From NCBI RefSeq assembly GCF_001194135.2, contig NC_069003.1:36896696-36960695 (forward strand): a DNA stretch of 64,000 nucleotides. Reading direction: 5' to 3'. A model generated the notes under the pieces. It saw only the letters and a program-made list of their open reading frames with translations, did not search any database and was not told the DNA's origin. Made by a program: the position numbers and the translations under genes. This DNA comes from Octopus bimaculoides (Eukaryota). This document shows positions 15,219 to 47,458 of this stretch, one piece after another (position 1 is the stretch's first letter; every line of letters starts with the position of its first letter).

Positions 15219-15648
15219 TGACATATAAAAGTAGGTTTCAAACTGTGCAAAGATCATCTGACAGAGAACTCGAAGCGTTCGGTAAAATGATGGACGGAAT
15301 AGCTGTTCCTTATATCAAATTTGAACGGTGTTTTTCAGTTTCACGCACACACACACACACACACACATACATACATACATACATACATACATATCATACA
15401 CACATACACACACACACCATTGTTGCCAGCTAGAGAGAGAGAGGCTAATCGACGAGCGATAAAAAGGCGGAAGTAAAGAAGAATAGAAAGAGAACACATT
15501 CTTTTGAACAATCCTTTAAGTTTTCAGGCTGTAGGTGGCGCTGTGTGTGCGTGTGTGCATGTGTGAGTGTATGTGTGTGTGTGTGTGTGTGTGTACATGA
15601 TTGAGTGTGTATGTGTATGTGTATGTGTGTATGTATGTATGCGGATAA

Positions 15649-15694
<46 letters not shown>

Positions 15695-16256
15695 ATATGT
15701 ATATGTGTGTATATACATACATACATAAACACATGCGTATATATGTATGTATGCATATGCGTGTGTGTATGCATGTATGTATTGATGTGGGTGCACATGT
15801 ATATAGAGCTTGAGTCTCTGCGTGAATCTGTTTTCACCTCTTTCTCTCTGTACACGTATATGGGTATTGTGCGCGCGCGCGCGTGTTTGTGTGTGTGCGT
15901 GTGCGTACATGTATGAAGAGCGCCTATGTCCCTCTGGTCAACGAGTCTGACGAATCGCCTGTGCAGCTAAGTGCTTTAGAGGTGAGAAACCAGTGGTCAC
16001 TCTCTCACTGACCATAACAAACATCCTTCTAAATATATATATTTAGAAGGAGGAGGAGGAGGCCGACGACGACGAGAAGAAGAAAAAGAAGAAAAAGAAA
16101 AAGAAAAAGAAGAAAAAAAGAAAAAGAAGAAGAAGAAGAAGAAAAAGAAGAAAAAAGAAGAAGAAAAAAGAAGAACAAGAACAAGAACAACAACAACAAC
16201 ATGAGAATATCACGGCTGCAGCGCCTTTGATGTCTGTTAAAACTGACCAGGGGCTG

Positions 16257-16291
<35 letters not shown>

Positions 16292-18535
16292 CTGCAACAA
16301 TTGTAGATATTTCAACAACACTAAGGCTCCAATGGTGGAATTAGAAAATTGAAGAAAACTGATTAAAAGATAAAAAGATCAAAGCTACACGGTTACCATA
16401 ATTATTATGTCTTTGAAGAATCGTCGAGAATTATGCTGCCTTCTCGCTCCTCATTTCCCGACCCATTCTTCTTTTTCTGCTTTCTTTTTTATGATAGTGT
16501 GGCATCATTTAGCGGAGTTTAGTGCTTCTTTTGATGTTGGCTGTTATGTCTAGCAGATAATGCGACCATGTGAAGGTTCCAAAAAGCAAGATATTATGCA
16601 AGGGGGACAACTCATATACACGCATTGCACTTGTAATGTACAAATCAGACGGTTAATTTCTCTTCCTGAAAATCCCAGTTTATCCAGAGTCTCCTTTACT
16701 AACAAAACCTAGAGCTCCAATTATTATTAGTATGATTATGAATTCATAGTCTGGATACAGAAGCTGGGGGTTTCAAAGCAGTTGTCCATAAATATCTTCG
16801 TTTTCTTTGATTTCCAAAGAGGCATTTATATCTGGAGGGCAGCTGACCTCTATGATGGTACATACCTTTGCCCCTCTGTCCCAAACAACAATATCCGGCC
16901 TGTTATGTATACATTTCACTGAAGTTTTGATGTGAATATTCCACCAATATTCCTTGAGTTGGATACGAAATTAATTTTCAAATGTTTTTAGCATATGCAG
17001 CGTTGCGCGCGCACGCACACCTCCGCCACCACCACTACCACACGCACGCACACATTTACATACGCTCACATATACAGACACACACATGCCACAAACGCAC
17101 ACATATACATATACATACCGCACACATACAAACTCGTATGCATGCATATATGCGTAGCAGTGACAAAAAGAAAGAAACAAACGAACAAACAAACAAACAA
17201 ACGAACGAACGAACGAACGAACGAACGAACGAAGGCAGGTAGGAAGCGTGCGTGCGTGTGTTTGTGTCGTGTAAGTTGTGTGAATATGTCTACATGTAGA
17301 TATGACTTACGTTTATTGGTAAAAAAAAGAAAGAAAAAAAGAACTGGTGCCGCATCAAAAGTTAACCTTGTCGTCCGATCAATAGAGATCAATAAATTAA
17401 ATAACAAACTAAAATATGGGATCGAATAAAGTCTGTGTGATTAAATGCCGTTAGCAGAAAAGGCAATGAAAGAGAATCCAGATTGAAATCTGTGCAGGGA
17501 TCGATAGTGATTGTTAAAATCCTTCAACGCCCCAGCATGGCCGCCGCCCGACGACTGAAACCAGAGAAAAAATACTTGTGTCTTGCTGTGAAAATAGAAT
17601 TTGTCGATAAACCCGGCGAGTTTTCACAATTCTAAGCAAGAATCGAACAGAATTGCATTTTTTTACAATGATTATCTCCCCTCCACTGTGTTAAGGGAGA
17701 CAACTCTACATCTGAATGGAAATTTGTTTTAAATGTAAATTTTTTGTACTTTGGTTGCCAAGGAAACTAAAACTAAAGCTTGAGTTGTTATTTACTTTAT
17801 TTCTGTCGTTCTGTGAGACAATAACATCTTTGACAACAACAGCAGCAGCAATAGCAACAACAACTACAACGAGAATAATCTTTTTTACTCAAGGCACAAA
17901 GCCCGACATTTTGGGGGAGGAGGAGGCCAGTCGATTAGATCGACCCCAGTACGCAACTGGTACTTGATTCATCGACCCCGAAAGGATGAAAGGCAAAGTC
18001 GACCTCCCCAACTCACCACCTTAAACTACAACAAGAATAATAATAATAATAATAGACTTGACAACATCTGACGCTGAAACCAAGATGAAGAACGTGAAGA
18101 GGTGGAGAAACGCAAGCATGCCGTCATCTCACGAAAAGGTAATAATGATAATATTATGTTGTGTCTGGGGAGGGTCATATTGTCTTAATGCCTCCTTATC
18201 TAACACACACACTGGTTCGATTTCCACTCAAAAAATATTTATATTTTTTTCTTTGCAAAAACAACGAAAATTTTGGAAGAAAAAATATAAATAATAAATG
18301 AGTGGAAATCGAACCAGTGCGTGTGTTAATAGAGCTTTAAGACAATATGACCCTCCCCAGGCACAACACAATTTGATTCAACACTTGAATTCACATAAAG
18401 AATCTTGCAAACCAAACACAAAAACGAAAAAGGATAATGTAATTTTGGTAAATATATCAGTTAAAACGAGATGTCAATGTTATTTTCATTTTTGTGTAAC
18501 TTAGACGATAATATATTCACCACACCCTGTATGTC

Positions 18536-18571
<36 letters not shown>

Positions 18572-18644
18572 AAATACATTATGCATATATGGACTCAAGT
18601 GAGAAAGAGAAAAACAGAAAAATGAAGAGAAAGATGAAAAACAT

Positions 18645-18683
<39 letters not shown>

Positions 18684-18926
18684 GTGTGTCAGAGTGTGTG
18701 TGAGTGTGTGTGTGCGCGTGTGTGTGTGTGTGTGTGTGTCAGAGTGTGTGTGAGTGTGTGTGTGTATGTGCACGCATATAGATGTATGTATACATATAAA
18801 AAGGAAAAAAAAACATTCCTCACAATAAACTTTATAAATCATTGAAGCAAAAATCAGACAAGGAAGTAGGAAAGATGTCGTTTTAATGTTTTAAAAATGT
18901 GTGTGGGCTTATGGTTATTGTGTTAG

Positions 18927-20147: not shown

Positions 20148-20321
20148 ATGCATTGGACTCGCCCCACGACACGCTTTCTGGTCACAGTGTTACTGTTTCT
20201 AGTGACACCGGTCGTTACTGGCATTGATTGCAGTGGTCCTCCGTCGTCGTCTTTCTGGTCGAGCTCAGACAAGTCAGCAATGACCGACGAAGAATGCAAA
20301 CAAGAAAACAAAAGTCCCAAG
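20148..20321 (+). CDS. GPX4: GPx4/PHGPx-like selenoprotein, exon 1 of 6; join(20148..20321,28738..28805,29898..30045,30153..30298,30946..31030,32002..32034), 217 aa
   Basis: ATG at 20148; MHWTRPTTRFLVTVLLFLVTPVVTG...KSPK, then AAG|GTGAGT donor, phase 0, matching the exon 2 acceptor. Linking this exon to the GPx body across an 8.4-kb intron is inferred from phase and position. Confidence 0.7.
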
Positions 20322-21599
20322 GTGAGTGAACATAAAAATATTAAAAAAAACATGAAAATTCATCTTCTGTCGAATGGATTTGTAACTGAATTAATGCGGC
20401 AATATATGAGTGGTAACGGTGTTACAGGTAATTAGTCCCCTCCGAAACTTGTAGACTAACAAATAACAATTTCAGTTGGAAAACTATTAAATTATTAACA
20501 TTGTTACAATGTGAAGAAACTAGAATGACGAAAACAACTGTCACGTTGTAATTATTTCTTTACTCTTTTATTATTTAAGTTCTCAGTTCAAATGTGATCG
20601 AACTCATTGACTTCGACTTTCATTCTTCTGGGATTAAAGAAAACAAAATAATACGGATCAATTTAAATGACTGTTCTTTTCTTAAAATCTGGATTTGTCT
20701 ATGTTATAAATAATAATAATTATTATTATTATTATTGAGTGAGAGAGCCGTGCATGCCATCAAAGTGAGAGCAGTGCGTGCCATCATGACTACCCATCTG
20801 ATAAGGGTACACCAGGCACAAGCATATCAACCAGATGTATGCGACATGGTGATCTCATTATCAAGATAAACAGCGCATGATCTTGCAGGTGGGGCCCAGT
20901 TAGAATTTTCTTCAGCTCGAGTAGCCCATCCCGCTCCAAAGGTCCCTGAATAAGGATTCTTTGAGGATGTTCAACGAAACACCCATGTTTCCAGAGGTGA
21001 ATTATCCAAACCCCAAAGAATTCCTCTCAACACATGGTTATGATGCTCCCCCACTAGTTCTGCTCGTGACCAGAGATGCACATATTGTCAGCCACCAAGG
21101 GACATGCTCAATTGGTTAAGGTCAAGCATCTGACAAGCAAATCTGTAGTATTGCACTAAAATTGCTGGACTTGTACCAAATTTGAAATCATTATTATTAT
21201 AATCAATAATGACGGTCGCTCCTGTCAATTTTGATGTATGATTGCTTGAAGGAAAGGATTTAAAAAGAGAGAAAGAAGATAGCTTATGAAACTAGAAGAA
21301 CAAAAGAATCTGCATCTATTTGCGATGGATGCATGAATGTAATTTGAGTCCAGCGATGGAATTTGCTATGAAGGTGCAATGGGGATATTGGTGATTTTGA
21401 TTTTGTCTGGGATTAGGCTTAATGGGTCTGTTGATTGCAGGGTATAAGTCTTTTATTGTTCTTTTTCTTCAGTTCAAATTGTTTGGATGCATCATGACAC
21501 ATTTTATGCTATGCAGATCGATCTTGGCAATGACTTTCCCAAGATGTCAGGTTAAGCTTTAACAGATTTTAGGGATTGCTTCAACTTATCCTTTATACC

Positions 21600-21900
21600 T
21601 CAAGACAATTCTTCACTTGCCATGTTATCCCTCCACATGTTGGTCATACAAAAGAATTTTCAGAATGAGCTTATCTTTCCTTCGAACAACATGTCCTACC
21701 CATCTGCATTGAATTCTCAGCAGCATGCTTTTGATCCTGGAGATATCACATTTTGCTAAGATTTTGACGTTTGATATCTTATCTTGCCATTTCATGTTGA
21801 AGATATTGCACAGACAGCACATGTGAAAGGTCTTAAGTTTCTTTACATGTCTGTAGTAGGGAGTCCATGCTTCTGCCCCATACAAAAGTGTGCTCCAAGT
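21600..21900 (-). mobile_element. RTE-clade LINE ORF2 C-terminal remnant in GPx intron 1
   Basis: LLYGAEAWTPY...KLKTFHMCCLCNIFNMKWQDKISNVKIL...QCRWVGHVVR resembles the RTE LYGxExW and LRWxGHVxR motifs. Confidence 0.8.
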
Positions 21901-24900
21901 TTAAAAAGGATATATTATATAATGTAGTTTTACATCACCTTAAAATGACAACGTGGCCACGACTGGATTTCTTTTGCTGATTGTGTTTGCTTGATATCAC
22001 GGTTGACTGGAGATATTAAGTAACAATAACTCTAAAGAATGTTTGTATTCAGTCTTGGCTCAGCTCTGATTTATGATGTTCCGTTTTGGTGTAACTGGTG
22101 TAATCTAAGATTTGACTGCTATTTCTAGCGGGTCAGACAATCACGTAGAAGTTCCCTTCGTATACATTTCGATTATTTTCGCAAAGATTCATTAAGAATA
22201 TAAAGCTAACAATTTTTTTATCTTTTGAAATTAAACTCCTAATAAAAAGAGAAGTCGGGAAGAATATTATATTTTACTTTATGGTGTCTTAACAGAAACT
22301 ATTTGTTATGGGACAAACTCTTCATTCTTTTAACTCGGCCACTCTCTCCTTTCTATCTCTTCATCTCTTTTCCATCTCCATTCTTTCAATAAAACCATTG
22401 TTTCCACATCTTCCCCCCTCTTTCCCCGCTATTTTTATATTCCTTTATCTCCGTTCTTCTCTTCCATGCTTCTATTTTTCATGTCCACAACCACGACTTC
22501 TCTCGGTTTATTTCTTTTATTGTTCATAATTCTTCTGAACTCACTTCGTTGCCATAAATTGCTTCTCTCTCTCTTTCTTCCCTCCAACTCTCTTTATATC
22601 TTATCTCCCTCCCCCTCTCCATACTTTATTACACTCTATTAATGGTCTCCCCCCTCACTCCCCATACTCTCTTATAACATTCTTCTTTCTTCGTTTCATC
22701 TCTCTCTCGCTTTATTTTTAATCTTTTCTTTCTTTTCCATTGCTGCATCTTTTTTTCCTCTCTGTCTTTCTCCCATACCTCTCTCTTACATTTTCACTCT
22801 CCCTTCATATATTCTCTCTCCTCCTCTCTCTCTATTTATCTCCCCTTCTACGCACATAGCTATATAATTATTTGTGTACATATATATACACACACACACA
22901 CACACTTTATCCTTGTGTTCACATATCAAACACCCAGGAACACGTGTTAAAGAGCTGAGCGCGATGGTAAGTCTTCGTGTCCATCTGTCCGATTATTCCA
23001 TCTCTTTTGCTAAACTTTCTGGTTTTATATTTTTATTAATTCATATTAACATACTCAGTATATACATCAACCTATATATATATATATATATATATATATA
23101 CGTGAGGTGTTCCGTAATCTTTTTTCCTTCTTAAAGACTTCACACATTTACAAACAATGGAAAATAGATTAAATGACGTTCGCAATTATTTTAGAAATTG
23201 ATCTTGATGTTATAATGACCAAAGTGGCTTCTAAAGAAATTATAGAAGCCCCTCGGGTGGGTTGCATATCTTGAAGGGTCCATTCTTCTCAAATCGTATC
23301 ATTCTGCCGATTCTGATAGAAATTAATGTCTTTGTGGAAATATATAAACATTAAAAAAATGGAATCAAGTATAAGCAGTTTAAATGGAGATGATGTGGTA
23401 ATATTTTTTTTTTGTTAACACAATACTCTCGGTTATTTTACCCTTTGTAATCGAAAGGGGTGGATTAATTTGTTCATGCAGCAATGAGTGCATTTATTCA
23501 AAACCGGTGCGTGTTTTGTTCATGCGAATAAAGACTATAATCTCACACGCATGAATAAACGCAATTTCACTCATATACACGTCTGTGTGGGTGTGTGCAT
23601 ATACATATATATGTGTGTGTGTGTAGAGAGAGAGAGAGAGGGGGGAGACAGTTTAAGAATTCGTAGAATGTAAATATTTCAGCGTGTAAGACCCCCGGGA
23701 ATTTAATATTAAAAATGGAGAAAGCCATTTTATGGGATTACCTTAGGTTTCCCGCCCATAAGGGGCTTAGCTTTATGACCCATGACCTCTTCAATATATA
23801 TATATATATACCGGAGTAAGCACATGAAATGTGCAACAAGGTGGAAAAAAGAGTACTCAAATACCAGAGGTAGAGTAATATATATATATATATATATATA
23901 NNNNNNNNNNNNNNNNNNNNNNNNNNNNNNNNNNNNNNNNNNNNNNNNNNNNNNNNNNNNNNNNNNNNNNNNNNNNNNNNNNNNNNNNNNNNNATATAGG
24001 GAAATTATACTGAAGTCTTCGAATTTGCTGGGAGGTATTAATGTATTAATCAACCTTCCGTAAAATGGTATTCTATTGAGGTGATCTCACTCATAGTTTA
24101 ATATAGTCTTTTCTCTTCACCTCACCGGTAATTACAGTTAAAACATTCATAAACCAATTTGACTGAACATATTCTAGTCAAGCTTACAAATGTTCGTATC
24201 TTACCTGACAGTAAATATAAATTTTAATCCTACATTACTGTAGTCTTCCAGAGTGGATTTTTTTCTACAGGTATAACAGTGCCAGGAATAGGTAAATGGC
24301 ACTGGGCTATACTGTGCTTATTTTTTAAGAATCTTTACGAGATATTTTTTTAAAAAAGAATAAAGGTGAACCAACTATTATATGCATCTATAGCCGTAGA
24401 AAACTGGCCTTACTTCGGTGTTGGTCTACAGTGTCGGTGTCAGGAGACGATGCTATTCACCCTTTTTCAGCCTTGTCCCTTTTATTTATGTCACGAGGGA
24501 AAGTTGTGCGGGTGAATGACATCGTGTACCAATATCGAAGGATTACCAGAATATTTCGACCAATTTTCTAGGGTTTGCTCTAGACCCTCCCACTCACTCA
24601 GGCGATTTTAAGGTGGTTATTTTAATGAAGACCACCGCTTCACGTAAAGGGTACGGAATATAATCTTCATTTTGATTAAAATACCAGCTACTGCAGAGTA
24701 AAACCTCTCCCTACAGTTCACCAGCATTTAGCATCTCTGGCGGTCACTCCCTTGCTGTCCATTTGTTATTTTACTTTCTGTCTACCAATCTGAGTGGAGT
24801 GTGAAACCTATTACGTTTTATTATATGTAAGATTCAGTCTACTATGCTATACATTTAAACTTCCCTGATGTCAGAACTCTGTCAAAAAGTCCCATAAATA

Positions 24901-26153
24901 GAAGTTTGGCAAGTATTTAATTACGTTATACCTTTTGCCAGTTAAACTGATTTTGTTTTGCCCAGGTCACACTTGGCTGAGCAGGTTATGGACACCAACA
25001 TGTGGCATTTTTTATGTTTTTTGTTTGTTTGTTTTTTTACATTTTTGCCCCTACCCCTCCCTTTTCCTATCCTTTAAGTTTTGACAGCTATTCCAAAAGC
25101 TCCACCGATTGACATTCTATCCTCGACCATCACCTCTTTATGTATGTATACTAGTTTAATACCCGACAGCAAGATGGCAACATCTTCAGTGTAAAATTGC
25201 CTGCCCTTTTGAAATGCGACGTTTTTAATATAAAATATATTCATCTTGACAATGTTCTGCTTTGACTGCAATCTCCAAGCAAACAATATTATTATTAATA
25301 ATAAAAGTATTTATAATTTGTTAGTATTAATGTCTCCTCTAGAAAAAATTTGTAAAGACAACAATAGGTGACTAATAAGAGTCCACTTCTGCTTAAGAGG
25401 GATTTGTAATTCTATCCTCTGGCCTTAATCCTGTTGGTTTATTGATTTTTGTTTTGTTTTATATTCCAAGGTCTGTCACAAAGAAAACAATAAAGGGACA
25501 AGTGTGGTGGTGGTGGTGGGAGGGTTGCTATGGTGATGGTAGGTAGCAGTGGTAGCTATAGTGGTGTGGCAGTGACATCACTTTTGTGTGTGTGTGTGCG
25601 TGCGTACATGTGTATGTATATGTGTGTGTGTGTTACTTGGCATTGTGTAAATGTCACCATCGAGCAAGAAGTGTCCTTCATTTCCAATCTTCTGTGAAAA
25701 TATCTCTGGTCATCAGAGAATATTACTTTGCTTTGCATCCAGCCTTAGAAAATTACCCCAGCAAATTCCATAGGAACATAGAAAACTTGACTTTATTTTC
25801 TTGATGATGATGATGATGATGTCATTAATTGATGTCTTCATAAAATATATAAAGTGCACGGGTTTAGTCCTATTGCATGGCACCTTGGGCAAGTGTCTTC
25901 TGTAGCCCCAGGCCTTGTAAGTGGATTCGATTGACAAACTGAAAGGAGCCTGTTTGTAAATACAAACACCGTATGTGTGTATTACACTCATAAACATGTA
26001 GTAATAACACAATTGAAGCCAGTAAAGAATGCTCTATACAGCCATTCAACCTGCTAGAAACAGCAGCCTGAAAATAACAAAGAATAGTCTTTGTCTCTAT
26101 GCATACAATGGATTTTGTTCCTAACTATAAACACTTCACTCTGTCTACATGTG

Positions 26154-26196
<43 letters not shown>

Positions 26197-26307
26197 ATAA
26201 TAATAATATTAGGGACAAAATCCAAAATTACAGGTAAAAAACTCAATTAAAATCAATTTATAAAAAATTAAAATTAAATTGAGCCTTATAGATAAAGTAT
26301 ATATAAA

Positions 26308-26661
26308 ATATATAGTTTTAGGGGAAATAACCAATTTTCAAGAACTCATCGATGAAAATCCACTATCACATATAGAAAAATTAATAATTAAAAGCACAAT
26401 AAATGAGTATAATATAAAGTAAAGTAAATATCATAAGATAAATATAATAATAATATAATATAATAATAATAATAATATAATATTATATTTATATTATTAT
26501 TATTATTATATTATATTATTATTATATTTATCTTATGATATTTACTTTACTTTATATTATACTCATTTATTGTGCTTTTAATTATTAATTTTTCTATATG
26601 TGATAGTGGATTTTCATCGATGAGTTCTTGAAACTTGGTTCTTTTCCCTAAAACTATATAT
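26308..26661. repeat. Long inverted repeat (foldback), about 173-bp arms with an 8-nt spacer
   Basis: 26308-26480 pairs with 26489-26661; 3 mismatches in the outer 30 bp, inner arms complementary by eye. Confidence 0.92.
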
Positions 26662-27937
26662 ATATATATACATACATATGTGTGTATATGTAATACATAG
26701 AGGCTTGTAGTACATAAGTATCTGAATGAGTAAATTGACCTAATTAATGACCAGGATGCCATTGTAACTAGCGTCATTATCATCAATGAGTCGGTTATAT
26801 TTAGCTGGCTGAGGGTTCCTTTCTTTCAACTAAGAAATATTAAGGCTGGTTTGGGCAGATATCAGAACATCTTTTCTTGTGAACCGTTTATCTCCAGCAA
26901 ACTGGTTCAAAAGTTGAGAATCTGATTTTTCAGATTTGGAACAAGTCTTCAAAAAAAGACACTTGTTGTTGTTTAATCTCCAGGCCCTTCATTCCCACCA
27001 CCCTTCATTGAGTTGTCATGTGATCAAAGTGTTTTCAACTGTTGACACTAACCACCACCGCCCCCTCTTTTTTTTTCTTTTTCTTTTTTTTTGCCAATGT
27101 CAGATAAAAGTGTATCTAGAGCTGCTACATTATCCACATGTCCTGGTTTTCAGTTGGTAGTGCGATTGTGATGTTGATTTGAAGGAGATTTGGCTGCTAT
27201 TTTTTCAGACGTTGAACAACCACTTACAGACTGTCTCTCAATAATGTTGATATTTTATCAATGTTTATCAGTGAGGAGATCCTAGCCCCGCCACCACCAC
27301 CACCACCTCTGTTCTCATAAAAAAAAGAGGGCATCAGTGTTCATGCCTGTTTTGAAACCTGACCTAGATTTAGTGAGATTACTTGAGTTGATGATACCCG
27401 GTTGGAATATGTTCAGGGTTAATGCATAAAGGAAAAAAAGCAAAACTCTGATGTCTGTGGTGGTGGTCGTGGATGAGGGTAGGGGTTGGCCTGAATACTT
27501 AAAAACAGTGAGAGGAGAGACGCTGTGTTTTTGTGACAGCCATTCTTTACATATGGTAAAAACCTGATTACTACCAGTTCAACAGGATTTAATTACATTT
27601 ATTAGTCCCTGCAATTAAAAGCCCTCCAATTCATTGCACACACCACGTGTGTGCGTGTGTATATATGAGGTTTATGTATACATCATGTAAATGTATGTGT
27701 GTGTGTGTATACATTACAGATATTGTGCAAATGTATATATATTTGGGTGTTGCCAGAATTTTGGTCAACTGGAATCTTAATTAATGAAATGGAACCTCCA
27801 TTAGTTGTCCAATTTTCATTTGTTTGCGCATGTGTGTGTATAAATCATATACACAATGCGTAGGTGTACTTTATATACACACACTTAGCATGGAAATGGG
27901 TTTGTCGGAACTTGTTGAAAACGTGTTCTGTGTATAG

Positions 27938-28148
27938 TCTTTTACTTGTTTTAGTCATTTGACTCCGGCCATGATGGAGCACTGCCTTTAGTCGGACAAA
28001 TCGACCCCAGGGCTTCTTTGTAAACCTAGTACCAATTCTATCAGTCTCTTTGCTGAACTGCTAAGTTACGGGGACATAAACATACCAACATTGGTTGTCA
28101 AACGATAGTGGAGAGACATACACAAACATACATACATACATACATACA

Positions 28149-28183
<35 letters not shown>

Positions 28184-28270
28184 GCATATATGACAGGCGT
28201 CTTTCAGTTTCTATCTACCAAAGACATTTGCCCAAGGTGCCTTGCAGTGGGACTGAATCCAGAACCATGT
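27938..28270 (-). mobile_element. tRNA-derived SINE-like element, family A (representative copy)
   Basis: Shares TCTTTTACTTGTTT.AGTCA...GGCCATGCTGG.GCAC, GCTAAGTTAC.GGGAC and GACACTTGCCCAAGGTGCC..GCAGTGGGACTGAA with pieces at about 2094, 3176-3550, 25860, 30450, 31570, 33470, 39330, 47460, 48595, 52930, 60590 and 61600. Some copies show a B-box-like GGTTCAGTCCC/GGTTCAAATCC. Family name needs a Dfam/Repbase search. Confidence 0.75.
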
Positions 28271-28737
28271 TCTTGTGTTTCCATTTAACCCCAACCCTAC
28301 CAACTGCACCTCAGTCCCATCCAACCCTTCCACATTCAGTATACCTGACTGTTGCTCAATCTTTCTCTCTCCGTCCTCTCCCCTTGGCCCCACATTGTTG
28401 TTCTCAATCGGCACCGACCACTTTCAGTCCTGTTACCTCCCTTTGTTTTTAGCCAGCATTTGCTTCCCCTTTTTACCTTCACACATCTCTTTGTTGCGAT
28501 CCCATCTGGCTGCTTTCTATTCAATCTCCTGCCCAACAACTAACGTGACCCCCCCCCTCTCTCTCTCCTTTTACCCCCTCTCCCAGGGGGGTAAAAGGAG
28601 AGAAAGCCACTTGAAGCCAAGTAAAATTATCTGCAGGTGTATAAGTTTTTCAGGTAAGTCATAACTGAAAATTGATGGGATATACGTGTACACACACACA
28701 CACACACACATATATAATCATTGTTGTTATTTTGCAG

Positions 28738-28805
28738 GGATTCGACTTTTACAGCTACAAGGCCAACGACATTGATGGCAATGAGGTGTCAATGGAAAAG
28801 TACAG
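28738..28805 (+). CDS. GPX4: GPx4-like exon 2 (GFDFYSYKANDIDGNEVSMEKYR)
   Basis: ttttgcag acceptor, AG|GTTGGT donor; matches the N-terminal GPx pattern F-x-A-x-D-I-D-G-x-x-V-x-x-x-K-Y-R. Confidence 0.93.
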
Positions 28806-29897
28806 GTTGGTGATTGATTTATACGTGTATTAATCGTCTATCATTAGAAAAGGCATGAATGTTCCAACTTCCTATCTCAAGATGCAAAATGGAAGTTGGT
28901 GGAGGAAGAGAGAGTTCGGTCAGACAGGAAAATAAACATGTCTGTTTCTGTGCTTTACGTTTATCAAATTGCAATCACAGAGTATTGTTCCTCTGAAAGC
29001 TGGACACAGGGACAGGTGAAAACCCTTTGTCTTTATATAAAGACAAGGGGTTTTCCTATGTTTCCTCTATAAATCTACATTTGTCTCCACACTGTACTGA
29101 GTTATAAGATTGTGTAGCATAGGATAGCATTGAAACGAAACATTTTTAATTAACCAATAATTCTGTAATCAAACTAATTACCAAGAATGTGTTATGTATG
29201 CCAGCTGGCCATTCCATTTACTGTGATTGGGGTGAGAACAGCACAGAAATGAGGGTTGTGGATAGGTCATGTTGTGATGGGGGAGGCAGAGTTCTGTGTT
29301 GTTGTTTCACCAAAGTTCTTGCCATCTCAACAATGTAGGCCATAAGGTTTAAATTCTAACATATCAACCATCCCACTCACTCCAAATCTCTGTATCACAT
29401 CACCTATTCTCCCCACCACCACCACCACCAATGTCCCTAAGGGCATGTCCCAACATCTCTCCCTCTCTCATTCACTCCCCTTTCCAACTGGAGTTCTCAT
29501 CTATCCACTCTACAAAACACCTATGTCTCCTCTTTACCTTGAATCTTAAAACTGGCACAAAGCCCCCACACACACACACACACACCCAATATTACTGATC
29601 CCCCCCCCCNNNNNNNNNNCAATTGAGGGGGTTTTGACTTTTATATCTTGCAAAGGTGCTCGGTGACACAGTTGCTGCCAGTGCCACATAAAAAGCCCCC
29701 AGTTCACTCTTTAAAGTGGTTGGCATTAAGAAGGGAATCCAGCCTTAGAAACCTTGCCAAAACAAACAGTGCTGTCTGAGATGCTGTAAATTGTTTCGTG
29801 TAAAATCGATCTTGTATAAACCTATCCAACCCATATCATTGTGCCTGTCACTTTTGTTTTGATTGTTTTGTTTATTTTTATCTTTATTTCATTTCAG

Positions 29898-30045
29898 GGG
29901 CCACGTGTGTTTAGTTGTTAACGTGGCAAGTAAATGAGGTCTGACAGATTTGAATTATAGACAGCTACAGGAATTGTACGAGAAGTATGGGGAATCGAAA
30001 GGTCTCCGAATTCTTGCTTTTCCATCAAATCAATTTGGAAATCAG
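29898..30045 (+). CDS. GPX4: GPx4-like exon 3 with Sec codon ([49 protein letters not shown])
   Basis: tttcag acceptor, CAG|GTTTGT donor; in-frame TGA at 29935-29937 at the GPx active-site position VNVASxUG; LAFPxNQF signature follows in the same frame. Confidence 0.96.
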
Positions 30046-30152
30046 GTTTGTTAAATTTTCAGTATTTCGTTTTGTCTTTTAGAACCTGCTGCCTAAACAC
30101 ACACACAATCGCCTGTCTTTCTTTTTATCATTTTCCTCGTTGAACATTTCAG

Positions 30153-30298
30153 GAACCTGGCAGTAATGAAGACATAAAAAAGTTCGCCGAGGGATATAAT
30201 GTGACCTTTGACATGTTTAGTAAGGTCAATGTCAATGGTGCCGATGCCCATCCCCTTTGGCACGATCTTCAGCGTGTCCTGAAGGGATCGTTATGGAA
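30153..30298 (+). CDS. GPX4: GPx4-like exon 4 ([48 protein letters not shown])
   Basis: tttcag acceptor, AA|GTAAGT donor; QEPG and FSKVxVNGxxAHPLW motifs. Confidence 0.96.
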
Positions 30299-30449
30299 GT
30301 AAGTTTTTAATTTATGTCAAACAAAACTCCACTTTTATTCATTTTAATTTCCATTAGCTGTTGGGTTTTTCTTTTTTGCTCCAGCCTGGCCTATATTGAA
30401 GTGCTGTATGGCCAAAAGCATTACAGCTGTGGTCTTTCCTTCTATAGAG

Positions 30450-30815
30450 GCACAGGAATGGCTAAGAAATTTGCTTCCCAGCCACATGGTTCTTAGTTCA
30501 ATCCCACTGCATCGCACCTTTCACTAGTTCCTTCTACTATAGCTTCAGGTCAACCCAAATTCTTTGAGTGGATTTGGTAGATGAAAGGTGAAAGAAGCCC
30601 GTTGTGTATGTGTGTGTCTGTTTGTCCCTCCACCATTACTTGACAGCCAGTGTTGGTTTTGTTTAAGTCTCTGTAACTTAGCAGTTCAGCAAGAGTGACC
30701 AAAAGAATAAGTAGGAAAAAAAGAACTGGGATTGATTCAGTCAGCTAAAAATCCTTCAAGGTCGTACCCCAGGATGGCCCCAGTCTAATGCCTCAAACAA
30801 GTAAGAGATTAAAGA
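30450..30815 (+). mobile_element. SINE family A copy in GPx intron 4
   Basis: Head GCTTCCCAGCCACATGGTTCTTAGTTCAATCCCACTGC, central (TG)n, tail GTCTAATGCCTCAAACAAGTAAGAGA; reverse complement of the 27938-28270 copy. Confidence 0.7.
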
Positions 30816-30945
30816 TATCTGGGGCCATCAAAAATAGCAAGTTACTACAAATTTATTAAGAGTTCTATTGTTGAAAAATGAAGAATTTGCTGTGAAGACG
30901 GTTGCTCGTTATTCCTGTGTCATTGAACTCTGTTTATCATTTCAG

Positions 30946-31030
30946 TGCCATCAAGTGGAATTTCAGCAAATTCCTCATTGACAAAGACGGCAAACCTTTC
31001 AAGCGCTTTGCACCCAACCAGGAACCTAAG
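30946..31030 (+). CDS. GPX4: GPx4-like exon 5 (NAIKWNFSKFLIDKDGKPFKRFAPNQEPK)
   Basis: tttcag acceptor, AAG|GTAAGT donor; IKWNFxKFL motif carries the catalytic Trp and Asn. Confidence 0.96.
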
Positions 31031-32001
31031 GTAAGTTTAAACACATTTCAATCCGTCTTCTCCCTGAAAATAAAACAAAATTTTTATCATCATCATCATC
31101 ATCATCACCCCCATGGACCAAGAATTAGCATGATGTTTTAGTTGTTTAACCCCAGGTCCATCCTGACCAAGCAGATCTCCTATGATCAAAGGTGTTTCAG
31201 TAATCTGACTTTCCGAATGTGTTCTTTCTCTTTTTTTTAAAAAACATGTTAAATGTGGTTTTAAAGATTTGAGAAGCAAATAGCATTTCAGGGTTTGCAT
31301 TTCAAGTTCAAATCCCTCTGCTTTTTTATTTGGTTTTTTCTTTTGTGCTAAATTGAAATCCTCTCCTTTCACCACAACTTTCGTATATTTTTAATACTTG
31401 GCATCCATCTTTTAAACCAGTTCCTTTATTAACATTCATCCATTGTTTTGTTTCCAGTCTTCCTATTTGTTTCTGATTCTATCGAAAGCAACATCTGCTC
31501 CCTTCTTTTCTTCCTTCTCTCCCTCTTTCTAAATACTTGTTCTTTTCCCATATTTTGACTTCCTGTTGATAGGCTTGGCTGTGTGGTTGAGAAGCTTGCT
31601 TCCTAGCCATGTGATTTGGGGTTCAGTCCCACTGCATGTCGTGTGTGTGTGTGTGCACCCATGTCCTGATATCACATGATAGTTGTAAAGGAGCATCACT
31701 GTTAAACAAGTGAGGTTGTTGGTTTCCTTTTTCCATGGAAAAACATGTCTGGCCATCGGAAATATTAACCTGGCTTGGAAACAGTGGACGGTTGGCAACA
31801 GAAAGGACGTCTAAACCTGGAAATTCTGCCTCAGCAAATTCCATCTGATTCCTGTGGACATCAAATGATGTGATAATGTTGATGATGATGATAATGAACC
31901 AGACCAAAATGGTAACTTGTGGTTTCTTTTAATTGTCATTAGAATATAAATAAAATAATTATTTCAATGTAATCTTTCTGAATCTTTTTTTTCTCTTTCA
32001 G

Positions 32002-32034
32002 TCGATCGAGAAGGAGTTAGAGAAATTGTGGTAG
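32002..32034 (+). CDS. GPX4: GPx4-like exon 6 (SIEKELEKLW-stop)
   Basis: Long polypyrimidine tract plus cag, phase 0; fits the typical GPx C-terminal helix; TAG at 32032-32034, SECIS 75 nt downstream. Confidence 0.88.
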   Translation, partial: SIEKELEKLW

Positions 32035-32108
32035 CTGTCTGGAGACTGACCTGTAAGATTAACTTAATACCTGGAGAGGATAAAAACTTTGGGTTTTTAA
32101 TCAGCAAA

Positions 32109-32178
32109 AGATAGACTGGATGAAGACTATGGTTGAAAACTAGTTTTAGTTGACTGTAGTTGGATAAATTGTCTGTCT
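32109..32178 (+). promoter_or_regulatory. SECIS element in the GPx 3' UTR (probable type II)
   Basis: Helix I AGATAGAC(32109-16)/GTCTGTCT(32171-78); A-TGAA(32120-24)/GGAT(32162-65) non-Watson-Crick quartet; 11-bp helix II GACTATGGTTG(32125-35)/TGACTGTAGTT(32151-61), fully paired allowing G-U; unpaired AAA at 32136-38; small apical stem ACT/AGT. Confidence 0.9.
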
Positions 32179-33636
32179 TTGTTGGTCCCTACCTATGGTT
32201 TTTTTTCCTTTCTTTCTTTCAAATGGTTGTTTGAAAAATATATATTTATTCATTTACAAAAAAAGAAATCCCTTTCCTTTATCCCCCGCTTTCCCTCTCT
32301 TCTTATAAAAATGACAAAAGAAACGATCGGTTGGTTACTTTTGGTTGGACTGAATGAAGCTGATTTCAGAAAACCTTTTGAGAAAGACACAACAAAGCAG
32401 AGTTGGAGAGAGTAAAACAGTGTTTTGTTGATCCACCACCACAACAACAATCACCAGAAGATTAACCAACCAATGTAGTAGTGTTTGTCTTTTTTTAGGT
32501 GTAAATGTTTGGATTAATTAAATTTTTGTAATTCAACTGATTGGCTTTTTTATTTATTTATTATTTTAAAAAAAAAAAAATTTTTTTTTTTTTTGCTTAT
32601 CTACTTATTCCTTGCTGCAGGGACCCTCCTTTTCATTGTTCTGTTTCTTCTTCCCTTTCTTTGTCTTGCAGGTTATTTGCCAACCTCACTGGTGCCAGTG
32701 TCGGGAAAGTAAAGCACCCAGTCCACACTCTGTAAAGTGGTTGGCATTAGGAAGGGCATCCAGCCGTGGAAACCATGCCAAAGCTGACATTAGAACTGGG
32801 CTCTAAGGAATCCGAAAGTCAGGTGGGGTGGGTGACACTTTAGAGAGAATGCACAGTAGTCACACCAACAACATACAAGGGGACAAATGGGACTGAGAGA
32901 TGAATGTGGAATAGAAAGGAGACAGGGGTGAATGATGGAACATCTCTTCTTTTCTAAATTTATGTTTAAAATTATTCTGGAAGAAACCAGATGATTAATG
33001 GAAAGGAAATGATCGGAAACTCGAGGACAAGTGAGAGTTTTACAACACAACCTACCGAAAGCTGCAGATAAGTTCAGTTGTTGCAGCAAGGCAACAGGGT
33101 GACACAAAAGCAGTGTAGACAGAGCATTAACAGCTAAAAGAGAGAGAAGGAAATACTGGAAGAGAGCGGGAAGGAAAGAACTATATGATGTAGCTTGACG
33201 AGAAGCAGTGGATGCATCAACAAATAAGGACTTCCAGTACATGCATCTCTCACCAGGTCTTCCACTGTAAAGAGCTCTTTTCTGTAGGGAGGCATAAATG
33301 AATGAATATCACAAAATGCTCCCTGCTACCTTCTTTTACAAGTCTGACTATTTTAGAGACAATACATCTTGAATTTTCTTCTAGGGGAGAAAAGAAAGGG
33401 AGAGTAAAACAGGAGAAGAAGAAAGGAATAGAATTTCATAAGACATTAATGACAAGAGGCAAGATATCTTTAATTTTTATTTGTTTCGCTCATTGTAGTC
33501 ATACTGGAGCACTGTCTTTAAAAAAATGGTTGCTCTGAAGCAGAGATCAAGGTCCATATGTGATCAAACACTCTCTTGTGTCCTTGTCAGGGGGAGAATG
33601 GACTATCTGTTCTTTTTGCTTTTATTATTTAGTTTT

Positions 33637-35280: not shown

Positions 35281-35935
35281 CTGCCGTCAGTTTGGTTTTT
35301 GTTTAATGTAAACAGAAAATAGAAATAAAATGAGATAAATTCAGACCAGCTGCTTGATTTAGAAACTGATTAGATGAGTCATTCAGGGGGCATTTTATAG
35401 AAGCTTAGGGTCCATAAGTCAGGGAAACACAATGTGAGTAGTTATGCAGCTCCTCCTGAACAGCAAGGAACCTGTTCTGCTCTGGCCCCTTCTCTCATCC
35501 CCCAACCATAAAGATACCCCGCCTCACAGTACAGGTTGTAAAGTGGTTGGCATTGGGAAGGGAATCCAACCATAGAAAAATGCCAAAGCAGACACTGGAG
35601 CAGGAAGCTGTCCTTGGGCCCATCGGAGCCATGTCAAACTGTTCAACCCATGGCAGCAAGGAACATGGATGTGAAATGATACACAATAGTATTTTTGAAG
35701 AGCTGTTTGTTGTGAGGTACTTTGCATCCATCTGGAGCAATGATACCATTGCTGGTCACTCACTTGGGACTGTGGCTCCTCAGGCTGGGCAAATGCTGTA
35801 ACTCAGCCAAATAAAGCAAAACATAAACCACCCAAAAACTGAAGGAGTGAAAGACCAGCACGGATTAGGATCCAATGTTTCATGTTACCCCACCACCACC
35901 CACTCTAAACCATATAAGAAACCAAAAGAGCTGAC

Positions 35936-37650: not shown

Positions 37651-38425
37651 CATGAGAAGTGGTGTGCAAGAGAGACGAATGCACAGGGATGGTCATGTGT
37701 TGTGTATGGATGAGGAGAGCTGTGTGAAGAAGTGTCACACCCTAGCAGTAGAGGGAACCTGTGGAAGAGGTAGACCCAGGAAGACTTAGGATGAAGTGGT
37801 GAAGCACGACCTTCGAACGTTGGGCCTCACGGAGGCAATGACAAGTGACCAAGACCTTTTGAGATATGCTGTACTTGAGAAGACCCAGCAAGCCAAGTGA
37901 GACTGTAACCATGGTCTATGCCAGTGATGCATTAACTGACTCATTTAAGAGTGCTCTTCAATCATTGGACAATAAATTGCACTTGCAAAGATCTGTTGAG
38001 GCAAGTGAAATCGTTGTTGTGGATGATGCCAGTGCTGCCTGACTGATCTCATGCTGGTAGCACATTTAAAACACCATTCAAGCATGATCGCTGCCAGTTC
38101 CGCCTGACTGGCTCCCATACTGGTGGCAGGTAAAAAGTACCATTCAACCGTGGTTGATGCCTGTACCACCTGACTGGGTCTGTGACGGTGGCACGTAAAA
38201 ACCACCATTCGAGCGTGGTCGTTGCCAGTGCCGATTGACTGGCCCTCGTGCCAATGGCATGTAAAAAGCACCCACTACACTCTCAGTATGGTTGGCGTTA
38301 GGAAGGGCATCCAGCTGTAGTAACTCTGCTAGATCGGACTGGACCCTGGTGCAGCCTTCTGACTAGCCAGCCCGAATTCAAACCGTCCAACCCTTGCCAG
38401 CATGGAATGCGGACGTTAAACGACG
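37651..38425 (+). mobile_element. RTE-clade LINE 3' end plus 3' tail sequence
   Basis: GHVLCMDEESCVKKCHTLAVEGTCGRGRPRKT*DEVVKHDL (GRPRKTW-like motif, in-frame stop). It ends in GGAAGGGCATCCAGC...AACCGTCCAACCC..GCCAGCATGGA..CGGACGTTAAACGACGACGATGATGATG; related tail pieces occur at about 29690, 32740, 35545, 49815 and 57960. Confidence 0.8.
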
Positions 38426-41400
38426 ACGATGATGATGACGATACTAAAATCTTCAATATTGGAGGATATTAGCATGTCATTACGTCCTTTATCTTTCATA
38501 AACCCTATGGTAGACGTAAAACGAAAATAATGCGAGGAAAACAATATTTTCCAGATATTTAGCTGTTATTTCTAGCATATCGAGTTTTCTGGTGAGGGTT
38601 TCATATTTTGTTGTCTGCTGCTTGAGGAGCAATCTACGCATGCGCAAACGAACATGCAACCGGAGTTTTGTCCCTTTGAAAAAGTGGTCGGGGGGAGGTT
38701 CTCGAAGAAAATTTGAAACTTAAAGAAAAAATATTCTTCAGATTCTCCGTAGTTTTCCACGTGGATTAAAAAAAAAAAGTTAGAAGAAAGTGAAAAATAA
38801 AAAACAAAATTACGATGGGGATAGGCTAAATTAAAAGTTTGAAAGCGTGTTTCTTTCTGGCAAAATCGTGAGAAAAAAATGAAAAAAAAAAAAAAAANNN
38901 NNNNNNNNNNNNNNNNNNNNNNNNNNNNNNNNNNNNNNNNNNNNNNNNNNNNNNNNNNNNNNNNNNNNNNNNNNNNNNNNNNNNNNNNNNNNNNNNNNNN
39001 NNNNNNNNNNNNNNNNNNNNNNNNNNNNNNNNNNNNNNNNNNNNNNNNNNNNNNNNNNNNNNNNNNNNNNNNNNNNNNNNNNNNNNNNNNNNNNNNNNNN
39101 NNNNNNNNNNNNNNNNNNNNNNNNNNNNNNNNNNNNNNNNNNNNNNNNNNNNNNNNNNNNNNNNNNNNNNNNNNNNNNNNNNNNNNNNNNNNNNNNNNNN
39201 NNNNNNNNNNNNNNNNNNNNNNNNNNNNNNNNNNNNNNNNNNNNNNNNNAAAATCCTGCGAGGAAGAAAATCCGAGACAAAAAAAGGATCAACGCAATCA
39301 TAATTTCCATCCTCAAAAATAAAGATTTTTTACTTGTTTCAGTCACTGGATCGCGGTCATGCTGGATGAGCACCATGGACGAGTTGGGATCAAACAGATT
39401 CCGTTACGTTTTTTTTTTTTTTTAAGTCTGGCAATTATCGAGGTCGGGGTGTAAATACTCGGCCTCTGCCGTGTTACCTTCAAAACTTTTTTGACCGTTT
39501 CCATTGCCAAACTGCCCAAGGGTGACCCAAGTTCTATTATACAAGTTTGCGGTGCAGGTAAAGAATACGCACACCACCCATTTTCAACGTAACCCTGACT
39601 CTAAACACCGGTAAGATATATCTTGTTAGTATATAACGGAGGTAAGTTTTACATCATCTGAAAAAGTCATTAGTTGAACTATTTAGTCCTCTTGCATTCT
39701 GGTGGGTATCAGACCTTTTGAGTGACATTCGACCCCCAGCTGACGCCCTTAAATTAAATCTATTTGGGCCACGGTCGTGGCCTGCGCTTTTCGTGTTAAA
39801 CAACTGTGAAGATCGCTCTGTGACTTTATACACAACCAAATGAATAAGCAACGAAACACTACAACAATAGATTTGTAAATAATAAAGAAGGAGAAGAAAG
39901 AGAAATATTGGGAAAACATTTGCTTGAAACTTAATGAAGTAATTAATTTGTCTAGTTCATTAAGAGAGTTCGATAGTAATTTCTGTGTAAAATAACAAAC
40001 TTACCGCCAAGTGTAGAATCAAGTTTTGTGGTTGACAGAAATGTAATAAAGCGTGGTTGTGAATCAAAGCAGCCGGTTTAATGAGCAACCGATAAACTTT
40101 AGGGCTTTATGTAAATTTCTTATCTCGAGTCACGTCGAGACAGTGGGGGCAAGGAGGTAAGTAACAGCTGATTACATTCGCTGACCTGGTTTCGATTCCC
40201 GGGTGTGACAAATTTCTTTCACATTCGAAAGCTGATTTTCTGCAGCTTGTTGTCTGAGACTATGATTTTCATTTAGATTTACGAGCTTTTTACATATTAA
40301 ATAAGTTACGAGAATCAGTACATTCTGTGAGGCCCACCTCTGTATATTTGTATTATCAACAAACACCACAAAACAGAACAACGTTGTACAACAGACAGCA
40401 GCAGTGATTTATTCATCAGCATGAATTGGATGTGGAGAAATTGCTGGCCAGAGGAGAAACAAATCTGGCCGAACCGAATATATTTTCGTTAATCTTACGA
40501 CTCTTTTTGTTACATCACTTCTATTACAAAATAGTCATTAAAAATTGGGTTGTCTCCCCACTAAAAAAATGTGGCGACAAGAGACTGGATTGAAAGAGAT
40601 CTTTCTGATTCAATAATTCAACACATTGTTGATGTTTGGCCTCCTCAATAGGAATGGTATGGTGTTTTTGTTTGGCAAAATAATTGACAATTAATTGCAA
40701 TAATTGATTGGCCTATACCCCGATTAAAATTAAATGATTGGAAAGGTTCCAATCAATTATTTACACCGGTGGCGGTGGAGGTGCGTCTGTGTTAGTTTGG
40801 ATTATTTTGGATGTAAAAAGAGTTGACTTGCAATGCTATTATCTTACCACATTTATCTGTTTTATATGAAAACCAGAAACTAATGAACGGATTGAAGCCC
40901 CACCCCACCCCCACCCTTATTCATGATATTTACCAGACAGATAAAATGTTGTAGATGAGGTATGGACTGGACCGTTCAACAGGATCCAGTGAGTCAAATG
41001 ACTGTGTCAAGCTTTAATATCTTTCTTTGGCATAATTTCTATGACAAGATCCTTTCTTAACACCAATGGCTGTTCAGAATGTATTCAGTGCTTTTTACCA
41101 ACACTAATGAGGTTACTATGGAACTCCCAAGACTAAAAAGCTGCCTGGAAGTCTCGTAGAGAGAGGGGCACCAGCTTTATGCTAGGTGCTGAGGGTGACA
41201 AAAGCATGTAAATGTATAAAAGAGTGCAGCAAGCCTTGTCCTGGATGAAGAATTTGGAGTTTAAGTTTAAATCCTTGAGCATTACAAGCTTTTCTATACT
41301 GAACTTATCCAGCTCTCACCTGCTGTCTGTATCGTCGCCCTTCATAATGCCGACCACCTTACAGGGTGTACTGGGGGCTTTTTATGTGGCACCAGCATTA

Positions 41401-44434: not shown

Positions 44435-45175
44435 CTGTTGAAAACACATATTAACCAAGATATTAAAGATGGAGAGAACTTGTGTGTATGTGTGTGCACA
44501 CAAACGCGTGTAGCTTATATACATACATACATACACACATATATATACGTGGGTGGTCTAAAAATCCATAAGTCAGGAAAAAGATGCGCTCATATATCTG
44601 TGGGTATATTATCCGAAGTGTACAATGTTATATATCCATCATCTCCAATCTTACGAATCGGTTTCACACTAGGGGTTCAATCGAGTGTTAGGTAACAATC
44701 TGATTATATAACCCTACGCTCATCAGAGGTAGCCGACATGGAATGAAATATGGTTTATTCCAGACTTGTGGTTTCAATGCATTTTGCTTTTGTATATCAA
44801 CTTTTGTTAGTTCCTTGTAAATTTTTCTTTGAGATAAGGGTGGTTCATTGGTAGAGTTTGTGTTGTTGGTTCTTATCACTAGAGTATCTTTAAGGAGAAT
44901 CTCTTGTATGTGGATATCATCACTGCTTTATCTAAAGTGGTCAAAACTGTGTTCAGTTTTGAGATAAATAAATTGAACTGACAAAATATTTCTGTGAGAA
45001 GTTTCTCCGTGTTTCTGATATCTCTCGATTGTTATTTCATTCGTTCTGACATTTTGTACATCCGAATAGATATGAATGGATTATCTGAAGTGTTGCACAG
45101 ATTTCATATATTAAGAAACAGTTGAGGAGAAAGAATGGAGGAAAGAGGGAGGGAGGAAGTGGAGAAACCACTTAC

Positions 45176-45379
45176 ATTGAACATCTCCCGCCATTTGTTA
45201 GTGTCCCCAGTAAGCAATGGCTCGGCGTGGGCCAGTCCTGCATTGTTGATGCACACATCCACTCCTCCATAATGGGATTTGATGGTCCCAAACATGGACA
45301 GGATGTCAGACTCATTGTTGAGGTCACATTTCACAGCCAACAAGGAACCTGCTTCACCTTTCAGTTCATCAGAGATTTC
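45176..45379 (-). CDS. DHRS11: SDR copy A exon 2 (EISDELKGEAG...INNAGLAHAEPLLTGDTNKWREMFN)
   Basis: cgcag acceptor, AAT|GTAAGT donor, 204 nt. Confidence 0.95.
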
Positions 45380-45534
45380 CTGCGATAGATTAGCAACAGA
45401 AAACACTTAATTAACATTGGATAACAGATTTTGATTAAGCAAAAATGGAAAGCAATAACCCAGTTTTTTAATGGGGGTGAGGTAACCAAAAAGTACCAAA
45501 ATTTTTTTCCTTTTTAAAAAAGTTAAAACCAAAC

Positions 45535-45666: not shown

Positions 45667-47458
45667 GGTTGAGCTGAGAGTTTGGTGAGGCACAAGAATA
45701 AGAAAATTAAATCATTTTGATGTAGGATTTGATGACGGACTATTTAGGAAAAAAACAAGAGAATTAGTGGGGAGGGGTACATATTTGAATGGGTGAGGAG
45801 GAAAGAGAGAGAGAGAGGATGAGAAGGAAGAAGTGAGATATTAGAAGGTAAATGTGTCGATCTTCCTTTACCATTTTTGCTCTAAATAACAACAACAATA
45901 AATTCTTCAAATTATTGGTACAAGACCAGCATGCCGATGATTCTGCCAGCTCACTGCCTTATTTATAATAATAATAATAATAATAATCCTTTCTACTCTA
46001 GGCACAAAGTCTGAAATTTGAGGGGAGGGGACTAGTCAATTAAATCAACCTCAGTATTCAACTGGTACTCATTTCATTGACCCCAAAAGGATGAAAGGCA
46101 AAGTCAACCTCAGCAGAAATTGAACTCAGAATGTAGCAACGGGCGAAATACTACTAAGAATTTTATTGGGTAGTCACAAGTGAGTTTGGATTTGTGAGAT
46201 GGGATATGAGGGAAGATTTGGCAGCTATTTCTAGCAGGTGAAGAATGATCATGTAGCAGATATTTTCTATGGGACCGCTATGCATGATTAACGGGAAATT
46301 CTTGAAAAATTTGAGAAAGTTTAATGCATTTTGCTGATGCAGTGCATGTGACAAAGTGTGTGTGTGTGTGTGTATGTAGTGAATGCACATGGTTTTGTGG
46401 TTGGGGGAATCAGCTCTCAACGGTAAGGTCGTTAGTTTGACTTCTGGAGGCATGTAATGTCCTTGAGCACAACATTCCATGTCGCTCCACTCGTTTGACA
46501 AAAAATGAGTTGTACCTGAGATAAAAAGGTAAAAAATGATAATAATAATAATAGAGTTTTGCTTCTTGGTTTGTGAGAACAACATAGCATGACAGCTGAG
46601 AATGGCTAGAAGAGGAACATATATTTGAATAGCAAAGTAAATTTTATGATTAGAAAATTGTTATTTTTAAATCTCACAACGAGAGATATTCAGTGACAAT
46701 ACTTTGGAGTAAAGATTGTTTGCCAATATAACATGGCAGTCCTGGAAATACATAGATATGGTTTTGAGCAGGGTGGTGGGTGCTAGATTCGCTTGTTCGA
46801 AAATATAAGGACACAGATTGTGTCGTATAGCCAGCTGGAGACGGTGTCTCCTGGGGCTAAATTACAGCAACATCAGTTCAAAACCAGGACTGCCATGTTA
46901 TGTTGGCAAACAATCTTTACTCTAAATTTTATGATGTTTGAAACTACATTTTCTTTTTAAAAAATATATATATTCTACTTACAAGGGAAAAATACAGAAG
47001 TATACTTTGTGTGTACAAAATATTTCGTGTGTCAGCTGCAGAAATCTCAATAAAAGAAAGACAGTTTTTGTTTTCCTGTGTTTATGACCTGAAATTACCA
47101 GACCAAGTAAGAAAGAAAACAAGTCTTTCTCTTTCACACAATTCAATTTTGTCAATGCATTTAGCATGCCAATTAATTACGCACACACACATCTGTGTGT
47201 GTGTGTGTGTATGGTCTGTATGTATTCAAAACCTGTTTTAGAGAGTTATGTAATCAACATCAAGCAAAGACATACCCTATGTATGTATGTATATACATGT
47301 ATATATATACATATTTCTAGTTGTTGCTTTTTTCGTAAATTCACCCATATATATATATACATTTACACATGCGTATATGTGTGTGTGTATATATATATAT
47401 ATACACACATGCATAAACATGTATATATACATGCACACACGTGTGTGTGTATCTTTTA

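Follow-up and report, generated by a model that had tools for sequence, protein, structure and literature searches.

Relationship to described GPx4 selenoproteins

In glutathione peroxidases of the GPx4 type, a UGA codon read as selenocysteine (Sec, U) within an NVAxxU motif occurs from sponges to vertebrates (PMC8614756). Here, we analyse a gene of this type in a stretch of 64,000 nt from Octopus bimaculoides (contig NC_069003.1, positions 36,896,696–36,960,695, forward strand; hereafter, the window). It is the gene listed as ObimGPx04B (XM_014914499.1, LOC106869007) in Table S1 of PMC8614756 (Biology 2021), where its SeCys entry is ‘Yes’ and its protein comprises 217 aa including U. Translating the six exons reconstructed here gives exactly the tabulated protein, in which U is residue 94. 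The same study records a paralogue, ObimGPx04A (XM_014922939.1), also with SeCys ‘Yes’ and with the same VNVASKUGLT active site; it differs in its N-terminus, keeps FPCNQF and occupies a separate locus outside the window, in which tblastn detects a single set of GPx exons. A preliminary description of the window had called the gene a hidden selenoprotein. The second word holds, whereas ‘hidden’ was an overstatement, because both the RefSeq mRNA model and PMC8614756 record a Sec-GPx4. Thus, the identity of the gene as a Sec-GPx4 is already known. The Sec insertion sequence (SECIS) element is not described in PMC8614756; the element, the transcript evidence and the errors in several public protein models are added by the present analysis, and it is these errors that are new.

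Mammalian GPX4 (phospholipid hydroperoxide glutathione peroxidase; PDB 2obi, 7l8m, 6hn3 and others) is of the same monomeric type, without a tetramer-interface insertion, and matches the octopus protein with an E-value of ~1e-60 over residues 5–156. The Sec position, the Gln, Trp and Asn partners and the location of the SECIS in the 3′ untranslated region (UTR) are shared as well. By contrast, the N-terminal extension of the octopus protein is hydrophobic and signal-like, not obviously mitochondrial, and LAFPCNQF is changed to LAFPSNQF. Alternative N-terminal forms of human GPX4 arise from in-frame starts, and the intron positions of the human gene look the same as those of the octopus gene. 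Among invertebrate enzymes of the GPx4 type, Schistosoma mansoni GPx (PDB 2v1m, 2wgr) is matched with an E-value of 1.8e-54 over residues 4–157, although it comes from another phylum and is more distant in sequence.

Gene structure and family membership

The reconstructed gene has six coding exons on the + strand, with a coding sequence spanning 20148–32034 (Table 1), and all of its intron borders are GT...AG. Translation of the six exons yields 217 aa, and the 123 codons that follow the in-frame TGA stay open. As had been noted from the letters alone, this TGA lies within VNVASK-TGA-GLT, with the frame open on both sides of it, in an exon bounded by AG and GT. We consider it almost certain that the gene, ObimGPx04B, encodes a Sec-containing monomeric GPx4-type peroxidase, the UGA of which is recoded by means of a SECIS in the 3′ UTR.

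Table 1. Features of the GPx4-type gene, its SECIS element and an interspersed repeat, numbered from the first nucleotide of the window
Feature	Position	Strand	Details and evidence
Exon 1, coding part	20148–20321	+	58 codons, MHWTRPTTRFLVTVLLFLVTPVVTG; donor GTGAGT; tblastn of P0121 against the window and direct reading
Exon 2	28738–28805	+	GFDFYSYKANDIDGNEVSMEKYR; AG/GT boundaries; spliced contig L001 (100% identical) bears out the junctions
Exon 3	29898–30045	+	active-site segment through FPSNQFGNQ; AG/GT-bounded, open frame
In-frame TGA (predicted Sec codon, peroxidatic position)	29935–29937	+	in exon 3, VNVASK-U-GLT; direct reading
Exon 4	30153–30298	+	ends with the first two bases of an Asn codon
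Exon 5	30946–31030	+	third base of the Asn codon, then AIKWNFSKFLIDKDGKPFKRFAPNQEPK; holds the catalytic Trp-Asn
Exon 6, coding part	32002–32034	+	SIEKELEKLW; TAG stop at 32032–32034
3′ UTR	32035–32466 (lower bound, reach of the transcript contig)	+	L001 447–913 colinear with window 32000–32466 at 100% identity
SECIS element	32107–32180	+	Rfam SECIS_1 alignment, minimum-free-energy fold, octopod conservation
SECIS helix 1	32107–32116 paired with 32171–32180	+	fold
SECIS core	AUGA 32120–32123 opposite GA 32163–32164, within GGAU 32162–32165	+	direct reading
AUGAA stretch of SECIS	32120–32124	+	direct reading
SECIS helix 2 (10 bp)	32125–32134 paired with 32152–32161	+	fold
SECIS unpaired A run	within GAAAA 32135–32139	+	direct reading
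Interspersed repeat copies	29692–29761, 35537–35594, 38245–38324, 49787–49870, 57940–58012

For the family searches, the translation of exons 2–6 was used, with the TGA treated as a sense codon (159 residues). It matches Pfam GSHPx (PF00255) over profile positions 1–107 of 108 (E = 4.9e-43), scoring 145.6 bits where the curated cut-off is 27. The top relatives of known structure are GPX4 chains, which align from end to end, interrupted by one gap of a single residue, also at ~1e-60; GPx7/8 (1e-36 to 1e-31) and GPx1–3 (1e-24 or weaker, mostly in partial matches) follow at a distance. The protein is thus closest to GPX4, rather than to GPx1–3/5/6 or GPx7/8, and has no oligomer-interface insertion. 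In the alignment to the GPX4 chains, the Sec/Cys position is occupied by the TGA codon, GNQEP corresponds to GKQEP and IKWNF is identical, so that the catalytic tetrad (Sec/Cys, Gln, Trp and Asn) is complete; the intact Gln of NQEP and Trp-Asn of KWNF had also been read correctly in the preliminary description. We take these residues to be Gln81 and Trp136/Asn137 in human GPX4 numbering.

Three signature motifs of GPx proteins are given in PMC8614756, namely, G[KRS]x[LVCS][IL]I[VET]NVA[STA][EQLY][CU]G[LT]T, LAFPCNQF and WNF[ST]KF. The octopus protein has WNFSKF exactly and LAFPSNQF with Ser for Cys, and it differs from the Sec-site motif at three positions (H, V and K). ‘Some differences’ from the motifs are tolerated in PMC8614756 only for non-animal GPx, yet the O. 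bimaculoides sequence is listed there as GPx04. The Ser of LAFPSNQF (window 30016–30039) is found in all three Octopus sequences compared in this work, whereas Argonauta hians and more distant homologues keep Cys.

The SECIS element

A hairpin starting at 32110, 75 nt past the TAG stop, has the two helices, the quartet and the unpaired A run that had been described for it, as seen by direct reading, in the alignment to Rfam SECIS_1 and in the fold. The quartet (AUGA opposite GA) is of the non-Watson–Crick kind, and the A run lies at the distance expected of a SECIS. The apical mini-stem with a GUUU loop corresponds to the form 2 (type 2) layout. SECIS_1 (RF00031) is the best-matching Rfam family, covering 32110–32177 with 24.9 bits and all 64 model positions. 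The E-value is 0.043 when 1.5 kb is searched against all 4227 families and rises to 1.8 when the same search covers the whole window, which corresponds to ~4e-4 for SECIS_1 alone. No other SECIS_1 match is among the 150 listed for the 64-kb window; at gathering thresholds, the Rfam scan of the whole window returns nothing, and the SECIS appears only at E-value thresholds. The 78-nt hairpin folds with −24 kcal/mol, compared with −11.6 ± 2.5 kcal/mol for shuffled sequences (z = −5.0), and none of 200 shuffles is as good. Thus, the hairpin is beyond chance expectation.

The bit score was calibrated on other GPx4-type transcripts from the protein search, which were scored with SECIS_1. Three TGA-bearing GPx4 transcripts obtained 41.3, 26.5 and 21.5 bits, suggesting that scores below the Rfam threshold are common for the SECIS elements of invertebrate GPx4. 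A Cys-bearing homologue (L006) yielded no SECIS_1 match.

From what is established for Sec decoding in eukaryotes, the SECIS in the 3′ UTR would be expected to bind SECIS-binding protein 2 (SBP2), which would recruit eEFSec with Sec-tRNA(Sec), and the ribosome would then insert Sec at the UGA and thereby provide the peroxidatic residue. Activated by Gln, Trp and Asn, its selenol would be expected to reduce hydroperoxides at the expense of thiols.

Transcript evidence

A search with the protein, followed through the cluster of the sequence found, led to the public Logan contig SRR32601320_3512 (L001, 913 nt). L001 matches the window with 100% identity, links exons 2–6 at the predicted junctions and extends to window position 32466, with the TGA at its positions 107–109 and the SECIS at 557–624. 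The UGA and the SECIS are therefore present on one spliced mRNA, and none of the three outcomes named beforehand as refuting the proposal is seen: L001 includes exon 3, reads TGA rather than TGC or TGT and runs past position 32109. A second Octopus transcript (L002, SRR16213285) covers exon 1 at 20217–20322 and likewise keeps the TGA and the SECIS.

The 5′ end of L002 (positions 1–115) has no match to window exon 1 upstream of 20217 and contains no in-frame ATG before MTDEEC. By eye, it resembles an antisense fragment of a mariner-type transposase. A chimeric assembly could explain the mismatch, as could an inserted transposon or an alternative 5′ exon.

Conservation in octopods and other homologues

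In Octopus vulgaris (chromosome OX597836.1, locus L003), the same five downstream exons are present with AG/GT boundaries, together with the TGA and the SECIS. The genome of A. hians (BAAFZT010000137.1; locus L008, 10001–30713) contains the same exons, with the active site reading VNVATK-TGA-GLADKNY, and a SECIS_1 match of 21.9 bits at 30646–30713, the flanks of which are shared with Octopus. The A. hians element lies ~1.06 kb past the probable stop (last exon SMVNDIQKLL*, 29555), compared with 75 nt in Octopus. Intron 1 of the A. hians gene is ~15 kb long. Among more distant homologues, the corresponding codon is TGA in L004, L005 and L007 and encodes Cys in L006.

Both before and after the TGA, most codon changes among the three Octopus sequences are synonymous, with 3–6 synonymous and 1–3 non-synonymous changes upstream and 6–14 synonymous and 3–7 non-synonymous changes downstream, which is the pattern of a translated region. 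Furthermore, when the SECIS elements of the four octopod sequences are aligned, 94% of the pair cells keep pairing, compared with 30–52% in slid controls, and the AUGAA, GAAAA and GGAU stretches are invariant. Three pairs are changed on both sides, one in helix 1 (A-U to U-A) and two in helix 2 (A-U to G-C and G·U to U-A). Collectively, the GSHPx match, the GPX4 relatives, the transcript and the conservation in octopods support the earlier proposal that the UGA and the SECIS together specify Sec in a GPx4-type peroxidase, as far as this can be judged from sequence.

Alternative interpretations of the TGA codon

Several observations weigh against the Sec assignment. The insertion of Sec is a prediction from sequence. 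With 24.9 bits, the SECIS_1 match falls short of the Rfam gathering score of 35, and one TGA-bearing homologue (L005) is without a SECIS match. The A. hians element, folded alone, is no better than its shuffles (z = 0.16). Covariation support is thin, as it comes from four close sequences and is equalled by 40 of 500 shuffles; on the three Octopus sequences it is uninformative, 346 of 500 shuffles scoring as high. Finally, L001 is taken to derive from RNA solely because it lacks introns.

Standard decoding makes the TGA a genuine stop, and the 97-aa A. hians model (P0124) is annotated in this way. The locus would then be a decaying pseudogene, or it would encode a 93-aa N-terminal fragment followed by untranslated exons, and the sub-threshold score of the SECIS can be cited in favour of such a reading. 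However, four octopods and more distant homologues keep the TGA at the catalytic position, and the codons beyond it not only remain open but also change mostly synonymously. Moreover, the splice sites are intact, the gene is expressed and a SECIS-shaped element is conserved in its 3′ UTR. Termination at this codon is thus very improbable. Sec could also be replaced by Cys, Trp or Arg if a near-cognate tRNA read through the UGA, a scenario left room by the fact that the identity of the inserted residue is deduced from the nucleotide sequence. We give it very little credence, in view of the invariant AUGA, AAAA and GA core of the SECIS across octopods, the missing SECIS match in the Cys control homologue and the presence of Sec at this very position in characterised GPx4 enzymes (PMC8614756).

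A further possibility is that TGA stands in error for TGC or TGT as a result of sequencing or assembly, given that the draft assembly contains many N gaps, one of them (29610–29619) only 316 nt upstream of the codon. Against such an error, the independently assembled transcript L001 reads TGA and is identical to the window over all 913 nt, and TGA is also read in the genomes of two further species and in one more transcript; the chance of an error is negligible. Hence, recoding of the UGA as Sec is the interpretation that we retain.

Two potential N-terminal forms

Translation could begin at either of two in-frame ATG codons in exon 1. The first, at 20148, is preceded by an in-frame stop at a distance of 8 codons and opens a hydrophobic, signal-like N-terminus. 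The second ATG, at 20280, begins MTDEECKQENKSPK (MTDEECKQ...). The first start would give rise to a 217-aa form with the signal-like N-terminus, and the second to a form of 173 aa that lacks it and has the size of a typical cytosolic GPx4. The N-terminus of the long form comprises two Arg, a 14-residue hydrophobic run and VTG|ID, and resembles a cleavable signal peptide, unlike a mitochondrial presequence. A. hians keeps both the hydrophobic N-terminal extension and the internal Met. In O. vulgaris, exon 1 was not found within the 10 kb upstream that were examined, and conservation of the long N-terminus therefore rests only on A. hians.

We tentatively suggest that the long form might be a secreted or endoplasmic reticulum (ER)-routed Sec-GPx4 specific to octopods, a possibility which we regard as somewhat doubtful. 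If it were so, targeting of the octopus enzyme would parallel, yet differ from, that of the mitochondrial and cytosolic pair of mammalian GPX4.

Errors in public protein models

Automated annotation had been expected to truncate or split the gene, and this is the case in three public models. The UniProt entry A0A0L8HRV8 of O. bimaculoides (UniRef A0A0L8HRV8_OCTBM) matches the window exons exactly where it overlaps them. However, it jumps from ...EKYR to QLQELY..., which removes 20 residues around Sec, and its last exon is replaced by 32669–32803 (+), a false exon derived from an interspersed repeat, of which the window contains at least five other copies, 77–86% identical (Table 1). The O. vulgaris GenBank protein CAI9739801.1 starts with MKCQWKSTGA, the wrong frame of exon 2, continues from there at QLQELY and likewise lacks the active site. 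The A. hians model, named ‘glutathione peroxidase-like isoform X1’, ends with ...VNVATK at the UGA. An exact look-up in a collection of 15 billion proteins retrieved neither the 217-aa nor the 173-aa form, each with X at Sec, nor the 93-aa truncated form.

These three faulty models agree with the documented misannotation of selenoproteins, which is widespread outside the dedicated pipeline of RefSeq (PMC12822975). As the catalytic residue is missing from each of them, they would mislead comparative and expression work. The practical value of the present analysis is therefore one of curation, namely, a correction note for the three models. Its biological weight is small, given how widely Sec-GPx4 is distributed among animals and that the O. 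bimaculoides gene has already been tabulated (PMC8614756).

Other features of the window

The − strand carries, at 45104–45406, one exon of a short-chain dehydrogenase/reductase (Pfam adh_short, 4.1e-12). In O. vulgaris, the GPx gene is closely followed by an adh_short gene in the opposite orientation (L003 20305–27454). As adh_short accompanies the GPx gene in both the window and O. vulgaris, the neighbourhood is syntenic. Seven other open reading frames of the window have no Pfam match, and ARAGORN finds no tRNA anywhere in the window.

Introns 4 and 5 contain related stretches (30459–30512 and 31584–31637, respectively) with 76% identity, which resemble pieces of tRNA-derived short interspersed elements. 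The assembly gap in intron 2 consists of 10 N, adjoins a poly-C run and a CA repeat and touches no exon. Larger N runs, also assembly gaps, are found at 2805–3175, 4351–4987, 9079–10039 and 38898–39249.

Apart from the SECIS, the Rfam scan of the whole window gave 207 sub-threshold matches, most of them to microRNA families; these were attributed to CA/TA microsatellites and disregarded. The microRNA-family matches (mir-297, mir-3149, mir-466 and others), which make up most of the 150 listed, fall at 6150–18800, 26140–28190, 47350–47450 and elsewhere. We treat them as low-complexity artefacts, because the sequence, where read, consists of CA/TA microsatellites.

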